Source: Macrostomum hystrix (lineage: Eukaryota; Animalia; Platyhelminthes). From it: DNA of 64,000 nt. The notes beneath the pieces are model-generated. The model saw only the letters and a list, made by a program, of their open reading frames with translations. It was not told the DNA's origin and made no database searches. Shown one piece after another: positions 16,451 through 22,975 of this stretch. The position numbers and the translations under genes were made by a program. How positions within the stretch are numbered: the stretch's first letter is position 1; each line of letters opens with the position of its first letter. The DNA is taken from assembly GCA_950097015.1 (NCBI GenBank), contig CATNEN010000011.1, positions 2,232,001 to 2,296,000 of the forward strand, in the 5' to 3' direction.

Positions 16451-17058
16451 ATTCAATGTACAAATTTCACTCCTCTATTTGAAAACTAACGTACTATTGA
16501 CTCGCGCCATGGTAACTCCTAGTAATAGAAAAACTAAATAATTTTTTTCAAGTATGAAATGATTTTGTACGCATGATATTGATAAAAGTTATCGCAGTTT
16601 AACATAATAGTTTTAAATTTTGTTATATTTAACTGATGAAAATAGATCAGCTGATGTGACAAACAAACCATTTGTAAACATTTTGTTTTACTAGGCTTAT
16701 TCATTTTTTTGCTTTTTATTATGTAAAAAAAAATTTTTAACAGTAGCCAGACCACGGGGTATTTAGAATCGCTTCGAAAAATATATTGCTGTTGTTCTAG
16801 TTTTTTTGTTACCAGGGTCTTCGAGCGGAAAAATTTGATCACCGTAATTGGTGGACTTTCACGGTCATCGGTCATTCGGTTTGGGAGCTGTCGTGAAGTG
16901 GGCAGCGGGTATTTAAAATAGCCTCCGTGGTCTTCCCCCGGGGGGGAAATTATATTGTGTTCTGTTTACTGGTGAAGTAAGTTACCGCACATTATTATTC
17001 ACAACACGCGCACGCGCACATGACATGCGTTAAAATTTGACCGGGTAAAATATTTGTT

Positions 17059-18729
17059 TTAATCGTCTTCTTTGAGAACGCCAATGATGTCAACGTAGGT
17101 TGGTTCCTTACGTTCCTCCTCTTCGCCATTGTTGAATGAATCACGATTCGAAGTGTCTGCAGCCGGCGCATTTTCGACAGACATGCCTGCAGCCGTGGCG
17201 CCACCAGGCTTTTCTGACTGGCTCCGTGAAGACTGCTTCTTTTCCTTATTGGGCTTGTTGAGAGCGTCAACATCGAGCGTGGCGTAGGCGCACTCGTTTT
17301 CGTTCCACACGTCTTCTGTCTGGCTGCCCTCCACGTTGGTCGCTTCGATTGGTGGGGCCGAAGGCTTCGGCTTCGTCGACTTCGTCGGCTTCGTCGACTT
17401 CGTCGGTTTCGTCGACTTCGTCGGCTTCTCGGCTTTCGGTGGCTTCGCTTTGGGGCTCTTAACGCTGGAAGCTGTCCCCGCCGAGGTAGTCGGCTGCGAG
17501 CTGCCTGCGTTGCTGTAAACGCATTCCTCAATGGGCCCCTGTGGTGACTGGCTGGAATGCGAAGTCGCATTTGAACCGTGCAGGAATTCGTTGATCTTCT
17601 CGAGTGTCAGCGTCATCATGGCATTGTCGTCGATTTCAGCCATTGCGCTTCGAGAGCCTTTCATCTAGGTAGGACAATGCGCGATTACACTGCTTCACTG
17701 CTTTTAGACAAATGTCTAACAGGTTACTCAGTCATGTGTCCAATATATGTAACTCAGACACTTGTCTAACAGGTTTACCAAGACTAAGGTTGCTAAGTAT
17801 CAGGTTACTTGGCCAGCTGTCTAACAGGTTACTGGGCCACTTGTCTAACAGGTTACTTAGCCAGTTGTCTAACATGTTACTTGGCCAGCTGTCTAACAGG
17901 TTACTTGGCCAGTTGTCTAACAGGTTACTTGGCCAGTTGTCTAACATGTTACTTGGCCAGCTGTCTAACAGGTTACTTGGCCAGTTGTCTAACATGTTAC
18001 TTGGCCAGCTGTCTAACAGGTTACTTGGCCAGTTGTCTGAGACACTAACAGGTTACTGAGACACTTGTCTAACAGGTTTACCAAGACTAAGGTTGCTAAG
18101 TAACAGGTTACATGGCCAGCTGTCTAACAGGTTACTTGGGCAGTTGTCTAACAGGTTACTGAGACAGGTTACTGAGACACTTGTCTAACAGGTTACTGAG
18201 ACAGGTTACTGAGACACTTGTCTAACAGGTTACTGAGACAGGTTACTTAGCCAGTTGTCTAACAGGTTACTGAGACACTTGTCTAACAGGTTACTTAGCC
18301 AGCTGTCTAACAGGTTACTGAGACAGTTGCCTAACAGGTTACTTGGCCACTTGTCTAACAGGTTACTTGGCCAGTTGTCTAACAGGTTACTGAGACAGTT
18401 GCCTAACAGGTTACTGAGACACTTGTCTAACAGGTTACTGATACTGTTGCCTAACAGGTTACTTAGCCAGTTGTCTGAGACAATAACAGGTTACTGAGAC
18501 ACTTGTCTAACAGGTTTACCAAGACTAAGGTTGCTAAGTATCAGTTTACTTGGCCAGCTGTCTAACAGGTTACTTGGCCAGCTGTCTAACAGGTTACTGA
18601 GACAGTTGCCTAACAGGCTAACAGGTTAACCAAGAATATTATAAATATGAATACCTTATTCATTTTGAAAAGACGGCCACACGAATTACTATCGCGATGC
18701 TTCTCTTCTGAGTTCTTAGTCTTTGGCAT
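17059..18729 (-). CDS. Unknown disordered tyrosine-motif protein A (about 226 aa, 2 coding exons)
   Basis: Exon 18729-18655 (MPKTKNSEEKHRDSNSCGRLFKMNK, donor AAG|GTATT) spliced in phase 0 to the acceptor cctacctag| at 17664. Terminal exon 17664-17059 has CVYSN, CAYATLDVDALNKP, PTYVDIIGVLK. An upstream 5'UTR donor GTGAGT lies at 18799. Confidence 0.65.
17705..18630. repeat. 24-bp minisatellite gttacttggccagttgtctaacag (intron of gene A)
   Basis: Period 24 with variant blocks. Confidence 0.93.
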
Positions 18730-20059
18730 TGCCTGTAGAAATTGCAGAAAAATTATAAAGAAATCATGGTACTCCGGATGTCACACTGAGCCAACTCACT
18801 TATTCTCTGCTTTCGGGTTAAAAAAAGCAGAAACATGGCTCCACAATAAACTGTACATTCAACTCGCACAGCGGCGCAGAGTACAGCGCGGGGGCAGAAA
18901 CTCGCGGCTCAAAATTGATGTAGACTCTGTGCCTTGAAATTCTTTGCATCTCAGATACTAAAAAATCTCTTTCTACTCATTCGTCATGCCTAATGTAAGT
19001 GCAGCAGTGTGACTAGCTAGTTTTTCTAGATGTGCATACGTGAATAAATTAATTACGCGAGAGCGGTTGTTGACACGAGATAATATCCGCCCAGAAGCAA
19101 TAAGGTTTGCTTTGACAATCGACGAGAAAAACAAATGGAACACACAAATATTGTTCCAGTAAATTTAGTTTTATAGGACATTTTCTAAGAAAACTTTCTT
19201 AAAAAAAAAACTACTGCTTTAGCTTTTGTAAGTAGTATATTGTGTTTTACAATTAAACGTTTAGAAAAAAGACAAGCACTAGAGTATAAATTATTAAAAG
19301 TGTTTAACAATAATAAAAAAACAACTGAGATATACAATGCGTCATATTACACCACACTACACCAGGCTTAGATTAGCAAAACGAAACGAGTGAAAAGTGT
19401 GAATTTTGTCATCAGAAGACTAAAACTAATTAGCACCTCGCATAGTGGCTGGAGAGTGAAATTCTGGCAGCGTGAATAAAATGCAGACAGCAAAAATATT
19501 TTATAAACATTTGTAAAAAAACATAGGATTCGTTAGTTAATTAGTTTTCATTCGTTACTTACGAAATGACGTTACTTTTTAAACCACTGTACGATAGCTT
19601 TATTGTACATTTAGCGCAAATAGAACATTTCGTTACTTTTAAGAAGAAACGAATAAATAAGATTCGTTATTTATGTGTTTCTAACTTTGACGTTCAAACT
19701 GCGCTACGATAGGTTTTCGAGGACACGTTTCAACAATTTTAGAATCTATTGAGAAACTACTTGAATTTAAAGGCTTCATAAAAAATAGACTTATGAGTAG
19801 TATGAGTAGCATATAACGCATTTTCTTTAAAAGAACAACAAAGAAACAAACAAGCAAAACAGTTTTAAATGGCAAATGCGGGCGAGGATTACGGAATAAG
19901 AAGCTTTCTATCCTGTAATCCTTAATCCTTAACGACTGAAAACTTGCCAAGATTCTAACGTGTTACCAAATAGCAATTCATACTAGAAAGAGCATTGCAT
20001 TACGCGTGTGACATCACTATCAGAAAGCAATAAAAAAATTTACTAGTCTGCTCGAACAT

Positions 20060-21315
20060 CTACTGTTTGAGCACGCCAATAATATCTGAGTAGATGGGAT
20101 TCAATCTTTCATCATCTTGAACTATAATTGCTGCCGATCTGTCCAAAGTTTGAGAGGCCTGACTACCTTCAGCAGTTTCAGTAGCGGTGGCAGCAGCAGC
20201 AGCACCAGCAGCAGTAGCACCAGCAGTAGTATTAGTAGGCTGCTCAGACACGGGAGCCATTGGTTTACTCAGACTATCGATATCGAGTATGGCGTATGCA
20301 CAGTATCTGGGATCTCCTCCATAATACTCCCCGTCATCATCTGGTGGCGCTGGGGGCAGTCGAGTTGGCATCGAGGCTGGCGGTGGCGGCGGCAGTTGCT
20401 GATGATGCTCCAGTGAAGGCCTGAACCTAATAGACTGCGGCACTTCATCAGGATCAACATAGATATTCTCCTCGGATTTGACAACAGCCAGACTGTGTCT
20501 GCTGCCGTTGACCCGATTCGGTGCGTGCCACTCCATGTACTCTTCGTTGACCGCGGTGGCGCCATCGCCACGATTCTGGGATGGGATAGATTGTATTGGG
20601 ATTTCAGGTGACTGGATGGATTGGAATGGGATTTCAGGTGACTGGATGGATAGGAATGGGATTTCAGGTGACTGGATGGATAGGAATGGGATTTCAGGTG
20701 ACTGGATAGATCGGAATGGGATTTCAGGTGACTGGATGGATTGGAATGGGATTTCAGGTGACTGGATGGATTGGAATGGGATTTCAGGTGACTGGATGGA
20801 TTGGAATGGGATTTCAGGTGACTGGATAGATAGGAATGGGATTTCAGGTGACTGGATAGATTGGAATGGGATTTCAGGTGACTGGATAGATTGGAATGGG
20901 ATTTCAGGTGACTATAGATTGGAATGGGATTTCAGGTGACTGGATGGATAGGAATGGGATTTCAGGTGACTGGATGGATAGGAATGGGATTTCAGGAGAC
21001 TGGTTAGATTGGAATGGGATTTCAGGTGACTGGATGGATAGGAATGGGATTTCAGGTGACTGGATAGATTGGAATGGGATTTCAGGTGACTGGATGGATA
21101 GGAATGGGATTTCAGGTGACTGGATGGATTAGAACTGCAATGAAATATAATTAGACAGGAACATTGGTTTATAACAAGATGAGCAGTAGAAAAAGAGTGA
21201 AACATTCAAGTGACTAAATTCGTGATAACTGTAAGAAATAGTTGTTTAATTAAATAAAAGCAGCAGCCAAGCTTACCCGATTTCGAGAATTTTTTATTCG
21301 AAAACAGCACCGCAT
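20060..21315 (-). CDS. Unknown disordered tyrosine-motif protein B (about 184 aa, 2 coding exons), paralogue of A
   Basis: Exon 21315-21277 (MRCCFRIKNSRNR, donor CGG|GTAAGC) spliced in phase 0 to the acceptor atcccatcccag| at 20575. Terminal exon 20575-20060 has EEYMEW, NIYVDP, EYYGG, CAYAILDIDSLSKP, PIYSDIIGVLKQ. Confidence 0.65.
20578..21132. repeat. 30-bp minisatellite ggaatgggatttcaggtgactggatggatt (intron of gene B)
   Basis: Period 30. Confidence 0.95.
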
Positions 21316-22975
21316 TTGATTAGATTTTCTGCAGTTTAGTTATCTTTGATTCTGGTATCCGTGGAGCTTGTTAGTGTCAATTAGCGTGTCGAAACACTGA
21401 GTTTTATCGGACTATTTTAAGCCAATTAACACTTAAAATTCTGAAATGCGAAATTAATAATCCAATCTTGATTAAATAATGGAACCCAAAAGCTATTGGC
21501 AAGGAAATTGTAACAAAATTATAATTACTGGTTAGGCACCATGCTTAGTAAAGACGAACATGAATTTAAACCAAAACAGGTCAATACAAGCAGAAACTTC
21601 TTGCTTTATAAACAACTAAAATTGACTGCACAAATGCTGGGCACAGGTAGAGAGAAGAATCTGAGTGGAGGTGGGTGGCTGCAGCAGTCTAGCATTACAC
21701 TTAATTCTAATGAGTTATTAAAAAACGTGACCCCATTCCAAATTATTTCTTTTTAAGTTGAGTTGACTCAAAAATTAATTAGACTACGCTAAGCAGACGG
21801 GAAGTACAGCTGGGTGAATTCATATATTAAACAAAAATATTGTAAATAAAAAATCATGTTTGTAATTAGTTGCAAAGAGGTCACAATGGGTTAGTGACTA
21901 ACGAGTGATAGATCAAAGTGTGATTTTGGATATTAGTCTCTAAGGCAAGTGTTTATTAGTACTAAAGCCTTTTAGAATGAAATCGTAAAATAGTTAATCT
22001 AATAATAACAGAGTAAATATAAGCTTCACTGTATGCTTTACTAAGATTGGCTGTTCCAAGATTGACACTAAATTTATATAATATAAACAAGCAAGAGCTT
22101 GCAGCAGATGATTATCTTCAGGTCTGAACAATCCATTTTGCCCAGTAATTTAATAAACTAATCGCTCATTTACATCAGCGCATCAGTAAGAGAATTTTCT
22201 GGACAGGCAACTGGACATCTTTCAGATAAAGCTTATTATGTGGACAGCCATTGGCATCCTCCTGGTAAACATATTTATGTAGTCGTGGCTTTGCTGCTGG
22301 GGCGAATGCAGGTTCAACTGGTGCCATGGATGTTGCCACATTTTTTGCCTTATCTCAGTGCTGAGCGGGAAGCGAAAAGCTATTAGAACCTTTAAAACGG
22401 CCCTTCTCAGGGTCACCACATTGAACCAAAACTAGTAAATTGTACTCGTATATTCAAGAGAAGAAGTAAATCTGAACATTCATCAGACTTAATGAAGCAA
22501 ATAGTATACAAGCGTGGAATATTTATTGTGTTATCAAGATGAGATCAAAACCAATGAATCTTGTTGATCACAAAAAAGTGTATATTCTTTTAAAGTGACC
22601 TATTTCATATGCATAGGTGGAGCCTTGTCTGGTTAAGTGCACAGGGAGGTGTACACTGCCTGTTAATGAGAAAGTCAGTGCCACACCTGTAAAGCATCTG
22701 TGCGCCTGTGTCCTCAGACTTGCCTCCTTGCCGGCTGATGGTCTAGTAGCACTAAATTATTAAGGAAGTATTATTAATTATCATAAACAAAGTCACATTA
22801 AATGTTACATTAAGCTTGTAGGGTCCCATCTCAAAGCATTTGCCATTAACTATTGCTACTGCTATACACCAAAATTGCCATATGATCTACAAGAGTTGAC
22901 TAAGTGCACATGCACTGTTTAACTTAACATCTGTCTGGCTGCAACTCCCTAGTGAGAACAAGCCAAACAACACTA

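Follow-up and report, generated by a model that had tools for sequence, protein, structure and literature searches.

Docking proteins that gather partners on phosphorylated tyrosines have been described in several forms. FRS2 and FRS3 (the SNT proteins) are mostly disordered and combine an N-terminal lipid anchor and an IRS-type PTB domain with an SHP2-type site near the C-terminus; FRS2 also has the Grb2-type YxN sites pYVNT and pYENI, and its SHP2 ligands include Y471 (RTELpYAVIDIE) and Y436 (NpYIQVDLE). The Gab and IRS proteins have PH and PTB domains, PZR (MPZL1) is a transmembrane Ig receptor, and the sites Gab1 pY627 (QVEpYLDLDLD), IRS-1 pY1172 (SLNpYIDLDLVK) and PZR VIYAQLDHS are of the type pY-phi-x-phi-D-phi, phi being hydrophobic. 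The Dok1 sites LpYAEPLDS and LpYSDPLDS bind RasGAP SH2 domains (PMC3514216, Table 1). LAT, PAG/Cbp, SIT, NTAL and LIME are short, disordered, palmitoylated by the membrane and equipped with several SH2-docking tyrosines, and the acylation motif of GAP-43 is MLCCMRRTKQVEK (PMC2994833). A bacterial protein, Helicobacter pylori CagA, mimics SHP2 docking sites with its EPIYA-C/D segments EPIpYATIDDL and EPIpYATIDFD (PDB 5X7B and 5X94, cited in PMC7916045). Here, we describe two adjacent genes, A and B, of the flatworm Macrostomum hystrix, whose products resemble these proteins at the level of short tyrosine motifs. They lie in a stretch of 64,000 nucleotides (contig CATNEN010000011.1 of assembly GCA_950097015.1, positions 2,232,001 to 2,296,000), which we call the window and within which positions are counted below.

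Genes A and B are real, independently transcribed genes. The preliminary description of this DNA, made from its letters alone, had given both the same architecture (a short first coding exon, a phase-0 intron filled with minisatellite and a long last exon) and had named a lack of transcripts as something that would tell against them. Public transcript contigs from two studies, aligned to positions 16700-22600, bear this architecture out, being spliced and confined to exons for both genes. Each gene is on the minus strand and has two exons. In A, contigs of the runs X2, X3 and X4 join 17664 to 18655, skipping 990 nt; in B, contigs of the same runs join 20575 to 21277, skipping 701 nt, a joint which the run X1 shares. 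Both joints read CT..AC on the plus strand, that is GT..AG on the minus strand, and both introns are of phase 0. X2-X4 are three runs of one study and show exon-only coverage, and X1, from the other study, gives partial coverage. The four runs are not on record as RNA; we infer that they are RNA from their small contig sets, from the zero depth in introns and intergenic DNA and from the exact removal of canonical introns.

Exon 1 of A (18655..18778) carries the 5' untranslated region (UTR) and, from an ATG at 18729, 25 codons (MPKTKNSEEKHRDSNSCGRLFKMNK) that end in phase 0. It is followed by the intron (17665..18654, 990 nt, GT..AG), which is mostly a 24/48-bp minisatellite, and by exon 2 (16870..17664), which is coding over 17059-17664 for 201 codons, has its stop at 17059-17061 and continues into the 3' UTR. 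Exon 1 of B (21277..21441) has its ATG at 21315 and 13 codons (MRCCFRIKNSRNR), likewise ending in phase 0; the intron (20576..21276, 701 nt, GT..AG) is filled by a 30-bp minisatellite in 18.4 copies, and exon 2 (19221..20575) is coding over 20060-20575 for 171 codons, with the stop at 20060-20062 and a 3' UTR of ~840 nt. The open frames that hold the three tyrosine blocks are 17059-17664 (201 aa) and 20060-20536, both on the minus strand, and the spliced models, which were analysed exon by exon, predict proteins of 25+201 = 226 aa for A and 13+171 = 184 aa for B.

The two genes are paralogous; their BLASTP alignment is confined to the C-terminal ~80 residues (34% identity, E 6e-9). A genome search with patterns for the second and third tyrosine motifs, which the preliminary description had recommended, was run with degenerate DNA patterns on the M. 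hystrix assembly (220,453,370 bases in 42 contigs) and found A and B to be the only two copies in the 220-Mb genome; no third copy was found there, the weak matches all being of low complexity. Both genes have an orthologue in Macrostomum lignano, where the gene calls give 181 aa for B and 228 aa for A; the identifiers attached to the M. lignano orthologues are BOX15_Mlig024206g1, Mlig014716g1, Mlig031284g1 and Mlig012887g1. The order of the M. lignano locus is a U2AF1-like gene (-), the B orthologue (+), the A orthologue (+) and O-FucT (-), and the M. hystrix window has the mirror order, with O-FucT (+) at 12.9-15.9 kb, A (-), B (-) and U2AF1 (+) at 28.9-33.05 kb, as established by tblastn of all open frames of the M. 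lignano locus against the window. As the tandem and its neighbours are collinear in both species, the pair must predate the split between M. hystrix and M. lignano.

Identity between the orthologues is low (42% for B, E 2e-30; 34% for A, E 2e-8) and is concentrated in a few islands, of which three are centred on tyrosine. Motif 1 is ECVYSN in A (17509..17526, minus strand as for all the motifs), with a YxN core of the Grb2 type that reads EPVYAN in M. lignano; in B it is ENIYVDPDEVPQSIR (20426..20470; core ENIYVD), which is of the YxxP type, like the RasGAP sites of Dok1, and reads ENLYIDPDEVPESIR in M. lignano. Motif 2 is CAYATLDVDALNKP in A (17251..17292) and CAYAILDIDSLSKP in B (20261..20302), with GLYAVLDIESLSKP in M. 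lignano B, to be compared with ELYAVIDIE around FRS2 Y471. Motif 3 is PTYVDIIGVLK in A (17071..17103), close to the C-terminus, and NPIYSDIIGVLK in B (20066..20101, including PIYSDIIGVLK), where only a glutamine stands between it and the stop and where an NPxY overlaps the YxxI. The blocks and their order were thus just as first described. In the four-way alignment, the invariant columns are E-x-x-Y in motif 1, Y-A-x-L-D-x-[DE]-x-L-x-K-P in motif 2 and P-x-Y-x-D-I-[IV]-G-V-L-K in motif 3, and the motif tyrosines themselves are invariant at 12 of 12 positions (three motifs in four proteins), so that the conservation in further homologues on which the preliminary description had staked its case was indeed found. 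The three tyrosines of M. hystrix A exon 2 all fall within one or other of the motifs. An acidic run precedes motif 3 in all four proteins (EEEERKEPTYVDI, EDDVIEHPVYADI, QDDERLNPIYSDI and DEEERLNPIYSDI).

Outside the tyrosine motifs, the conserved elements are few. The MRCCF with which B had been said to begin (21301..21315, minus strand) is confirmed by the spliced exon 1 and is a putative dual S-acylation signal; its M. lignano counterpart begins MLCCCF, so the cysteine cluster is kept (MRCCFRIKNSRNR against MLCCCFRNGKWRPR), with basic residues next to it in both. The B orthologues also share an RG[DN]G..AVN.EYM block and an LPPPP run. The N-terminus of A is basic in both species (MPKTK, and MRKAK in M. 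lignano) and lacks a conserved cysteine, and the EKI core of a short helix in A, DNAMMTLTLEKINEFLH (exon-2 residues 13-29; 17578..17628, minus strand), is kept in M. lignano. Given a protein identity of only 34-42% between the species, synonymous sites are saturated. The best explanation of the pattern is that selection has kept little beyond the three tyrosine-centred motifs, the short helix in A and the N-terminal cysteine cluster with its basic residues in B.

As modelled, A and B are small, intrinsically disordered and presumably cytoplasmic proteins without a predicted fold. With the four-sequence alignment as input, AlphaFold2 gave A a mean predicted local distance difference test (pLDDT) of 56 and a predicted template modelling score (pTM) of 0.17, with one helix at residues 13-29 as the sole predicted helix, and gave B a mean pLDDT of 52 and a pTM of 0.11; pLDDT was slightly higher at the A helix (71-75) and at the C-terminus. 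Neither protein has a transmembrane helix or a signal peptide, no 19-residue window exceeding 0.7 on the Kyte-Doolittle scale, and with each gene having its own 5' end and start codon, the earlier statement that they lack a receptor part holds. A Gly2 for N-myristoylation is absent from B (M-R-C-C, and M-L-C-C-C in M. lignano) and from A (M-P-K and M-R-K).

The family is undescribed and, as far as sequence searches can see, probably restricted to Macrostomum, which agrees with the lineage-specific family originally proposed. Among 5.8 billion proteins, a word-index search with B found a single relative, an M. lignano hypothetical protein of 181 aa (E 2e-23), and the same search with A alone found nothing outside Macrostomum. 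A word search with the four-sequence profile at E<=10 returned M. lignano only, and a full HMMER profile search of 1.84 billion representatives returned M. lignano proteins and one low-complexity match. Profile and single-sequence searches of the PDB gave low-complexity matches only, the ESM Atlas gave no usable match, and the identifier Mlig024206 was not mentioned in the literature searched. Pfam, applied to A, B and five M. lignano relatives, yielded nothing beyond a sub-threshold SIT match at residues 87-137 of A (E 0.37, 11.8 bits against a cut-off of 27.6), which is not significant. UniRef names two M. lignano entries 'IRS-type PTB domain-containing', a label which neither the Pfam nor the PDB searches reproduced. 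A PTB remnant in A or B was considered and rejected: Pfam IRS (PF02174) matches none of A, B and the five M. lignano proteins at E<=10, the PDB profile searches brought up no PTB domain, and AlphaFold2 predicted no domain. The six genomic IRS matches, none of them in this region of the contig, belong to talin-like, FERM and IRS-like genes elsewhere. In UniRef, older gene models of M. lignano (318 and 373 aa) run parts of B and A together.

The motifs resemble several described classes of ligand. From physiological ligands, the specificity of the PTPN11 N-SH2 domain has been given as pY-phi-x-phi-[D/E]-phi (PMC3514216, Table 3). With alanine counted as phi, motif 2 fits this class in three of the four proteins (A, B and M. 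lignano B), M. lignano A missing it through a threonine at +5; shuffled sequences of the same composition gave a chance of such a match of 0.7-5% per protein. A site of the form YA[VIT]LD[IV][DE] is likewise present in three of the four. YxN, the Grb2-type core, occurs in both A orthologues (YSN and YAN), Y.[DE]P.[DE] in both B orthologues (as Y[VI]DPDE) and NPxY, as NPIY, again in both B orthologues; at the last position A has EPTY and HPVY and hence no NPxY. Motifs 2 and 3 both conform to YxxPhi.

One close likeness is to FRS2: its Y471 segment and QTGLYAVLDIE of M. lignano B share 8 of 11 residues, and its Y436 is a further SHP2 ligand akin to motif 2. Like FRS2 and FRS3, the worm proteins are mostly disordered, carry (for B) a proposed N-terminal lipid anchor and have, at motif level, an SHP2-type site near the C-terminus; the YxN of A parallels the two Grb2-type sites of FRS2. 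They differ in lacking an IRS-type PTB domain or any other fold, in being much shorter (184-228 aa) and in the absence of Gly2 from B, which would depend on cysteine acylation alone; there is no significant sequence similarity, and homology is unproven. With Gab1, IRS-1 and PZR they share the motif 2-like site and the placing of two sites on one chain, motifs 2 and 3 being 63-77 residues apart, and the second site of PZR, VVYADIRKN, resembles motif 3 in its Y[VAS]DI; A and B, however, have neither the PH and PTB domains of the Gab and IRS proteins nor the receptor portion of PZR. They also recall LAT and its kin, being short and disordered with several candidate SH2-docking tyrosines and, in B, putative palmitoylation, but without a transmembrane helix or extracellular stub. 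The resemblance of motif 1 of B, N[IL]Y[VI]DPDE, to the Dok1 sites is limited to Y-x-[DE]-P-x-[DE], and B has no PH or PTB domain such as Dok has. In GAP-43 and the B proteins of both species, M-x-C-C followed by basic residues stands at the extreme N-terminus; cysteines at 3 and 4 followed by basic residues were found in B and not in A. The remainder of GAP-43 is unrelated, with an IQ motif and no tyrosine docking sites, yet the conservation of the cysteine cluster in both B proteins means that the GAP-43-like acylation originally suggested for the double cysteine survives as an idea. CagA shares YAT[IL]D with motif 2 of A (YATLDVD) and [EN]P[IT]Y with motif 3, a resemblance of motifs only, its origin being unrelated to that of A and B. 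Taken over all these comparisons, A and B resemble docking proteins of the FRS2, Gab, Dok and LAT types and yet appear to belong to none of these families, having no PTB, PH or transmembrane part.

The reading that we favour, and to which we give an even chance, is that A and B are receptor-less phosphotyrosine docking proteins, with B anchored to the membrane by palmitate. In such a scheme, S-acylation of Cys3/Cys4 would hold B at the inner leaflet of the membrane, as in GAP-43, and tyrosine kinases would phosphorylate the motifs of both proteins. The worm's SHP2/Corkscrew orthologue would then dock with its N-SH2 domain on motif 2 (pY-A-x-L-D-phi), and motif 3 (pY-x-D-I) might join in, the two sites together engaging the tandem SH2 domains. 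Through its YxN, motif 1 of A would bring in a Grb2-type partner, and through Y-x-D-P-x-E that of B would bring in one of the RasGAP, Crk or Nck type; the NPxY of B could also serve a PTB domain. No anchor is evident in A, for which the helix or the basic N-terminus may be the means of recruitment. The two proteins would thereby do the job of FRS2, Gab and Dok proteins without PTB or PH targeting domains. Candidate partners are present: the M. hystrix genome encodes an SHP2 orthologue, to judge from an SH2-SH2-PTP open frame on contig 1 (about 10614977-10616617) that aligns to residues 5-527 of human SHP2 (E 2e-107), and 62 SH2 matches were found in the genome as a whole. On contig 11, at 6341046-6347651 (minus strand), two SH2 matches are followed ~5 kb downstream by PTP-domain exons; this locus may be a second SHP-type phosphatase gene.

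A number of points weigh against phosphotyrosine docking. The motifs had been labelled ITIM/ITSM-like, after the immunoreceptor tyrosine-based inhibition and switch motifs, but a regular-expression scan of the four proteins found no match to the ITIM consensus [S/I/V/L]-x-Y-x-x-[I/V/L] (PMC11085718) and none to the ITSM consensus applied here, T-x-Y-x-x-[V/I]. At -2, motif 2 has C or G, motif 3 has P and motif 1 has C, P or N; in motifs 2 and 3 this is unlike the hydrophobic or serine residue of an ITIM. The label was therefore too specific, and an SHP2 N-SH2-type site, with YxN in A and YxxP/NPxY in B, would seem the better description. Moreover, the specificity classes were picked after the sequences had been seen, which makes the fits resemblances and not tests, and the FRS2 Y471 peptide was itself not scored positive for PTPN11_N on a peptide array (PMC3514216). 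The conservation argument draws on two species and four sequences only; phosphorylation, acylation and partner binding are each predicted from sequence; and A has no obvious membrane-targeting signal, and its N-terminal cysteine is not conserved. Finally, the conserved blocks (DIIGVLK and xLxKP) exceed the positions that SH2 domains read, which hints at additional or different partners, and tyrosine motifs of the form Y-x-x-hydrophobic with acidic residues before them can also be read as ligands of AP-2 or, as LC3-interacting regions (LIRs), of Atg8.

This last point leads to the possibility that the blocks are phosphorylation-independent short linear motifs and that A and B are adaptors of trafficking or autophagy and not kinase substrates, the candidates being YxxPhi for AP-2 mu2, an LIR for Atg8/LC3 and an unphosphorylated NPxY for a PTB/FERM protein. 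The acidic run before motif 3 in all four proteins is the usual LIR context, motifs 2 and 3 are both YxxPhi, NPxY is in both B orthologues, and the conserved IIGVLK extends past the SH2 contact positions. However, in LIR and AP-2 sites an F or W is usually accepted, or the surroundings of the core vary, whereas tyrosine is found here at every position; the Asp at +4 and the hydrophobic residue at +5 of motif 2 fit SHP2-class SH2 ligands specifically; and AP-2 signals act on membrane cargo, while A and B have no transmembrane segment. We hold this to be unlikely, though with a real chance of being right. Similarly unlikely, and hardly different in weight, is some unrelated role, such as that of a taxon-restricted disordered regulatory or structural protein in which the tyrosines are ordinary interface residues, for example one that engages a partner by its DIIGVLK C-terminus and EKI helix and folds in doing so. 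The lack of homology to any characterised family agrees with such a role, as do a C-terminal GVLK and xLxKP tail as invariant as the tyrosines and the slightly raised pLDDT at the helix and the C-terminus, but it leaves unexplained why each of the three conserved islands is centred on a tyrosine, why each matches a different known class of SH2 or PTB ligand and why the N-terminus of B is GAP-43-like. A bolder extension of the docking reading derives A and B from a docking protein of the FRS2 type whose PTB domain disappeared in the Macrostomum lineage and which was then duplicated, B keeping the acylated N-terminus and the Y471-type SHP2 site and A keeping the Grb2-type YxN; we regard this descent as improbable.

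Two further explanations would deny that A and B are autonomous genes at all, and each strikes us as exceedingly improbable. Low complexity, the absence of a domain and the absence of relatives outside the genus are what chance open frames in non-coding transcripts would display, but the frames, the exon structure, the intron phase, the gene order and the motifs have all been kept between species whose proteins are only 34-42% identical. The other, which the preliminary description had itself offered, is that the long exons are alternative last exons, encoding the cytoplasmic tails, of an upstream receptor gene. For B, this could appeal to the good acceptor at which exon 1 begins (tttcag|a, 21441/21440) and to exactly 21 extra 5' bases in the contigs of X2, X3 and X4, which do not align to the 5.9 kb examined. 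Between that acceptor and the ATG, however, the 5' UTR has three in-frame stops, so that no upstream exon can lengthen the B protein, and no splice is seen at the acceptor near 21329 that had been thought able to extend B, the exon continuing to 21441/21440. The 21 bases probably come from the 35-nt spliced leader of Macrostomum, whose last three letters are ATG (PMC8629364); their equal length in three assemblies, together with 256 genome matches to the 3' end portion of this leader (at <=3 mismatches; many lie dispersed), makes it the likelier source. For A, the contigs of X2 and X3 terminate at 18778, where in X2 an Illumina adapter comes directly after, and upstream there is no AG and an in-frame genomic stop lies at 18781-18783. 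In M. lignano, moreover, the gene calls keep the two counterparts apart (181 and 228 aa). The 5' end of A and the in-frame stops of B refute the receptor-tail alternative.

Were the ATG of the leader read into the B exon, it would open an upstream frame of five codons only (ATG AAT TTT AAG TGT TAA). Exact copies of the 3' part of the leader recur at a spacing of ~11.6 kb on three small contigs (contig 15, 9730-33042; contig 17, 2765-120870; contig 42, 14534-73851), and look like tandem arrays of spliced leader RNA genes within a longer repeat unit. The nematode SL1 family (RF00198) gave no match.

The minisatellites in the introns of A and B are a pervasive habit of this genome and not a peculiarity of the two genes, for Tandem Repeats Finder detected ~30 separate arrays in the window, in introns, UTRs and intergenic DNA, with units of 16-36 bp and as many as 78 copies; some arrays were also scored at longer periods, reaching 79 bp or more. 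The A array of 24/48-bp units spans 17801-18617 and the 30-bp B array 20584-21134. On the transcribed strand, each 24-bp unit of the A intron holds a donor-like AAGTAAC and an acceptor-like TGTTAG; the contigs use the outer splice sites only. Tandem repeats, unrelated in sequence, likewise fill the intron of the M. lignano B orthologue (NIVC01001157.1, 10960-11800), and the intron of the A orthologue is a plain 171 nt (NIVC01001157.1, 16269-16439), which argues that the filling is recurrent and not inherited. A further short repeat, at 16849-16920 and 22392-22425, turns up in many different transcript contigs, with a summed depth of ~2000 and loose ends on both sides, and is probably a small, abundantly transcribed mobile element. 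Its first copy lies in or just past the 3' UTR of A and accounts for the halt of the A contigs at 16870; the real 3' end of A may be further on.

Should the docking reading prove wrong, A and B would remain a well-supported, conserved and genus-restricted gene family without a function. That reading is a hypothesis that rests on four sequences and on motif resemblance, yet one that is testable in a tractable genus: Macrostomum is a genus of regenerating flatworms, and its model species, M. lignano, allows RNA interference and transgenesis. Descent from FRS2, if true, would mean that a minimal docking protein can be built solely of linear motifs, and that these worms possess receptor-independent scaffolds, constitutively resident at the membrane, which set SHP2/Ras tone. 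If the docking reading itself is right, A and B would be among the smallest docking proteins known, consisting of an acyl anchor and three to four SH2/PTB motifs and dispensing with a folded targeting domain; they would offer a simple system in which to see how the recruitment of SHP2, Grb2 and RasGAP is wired outside the vertebrates and insects, and a clean case of scaffolds that evolve as strings of linear motifs invisible to sequence searches.

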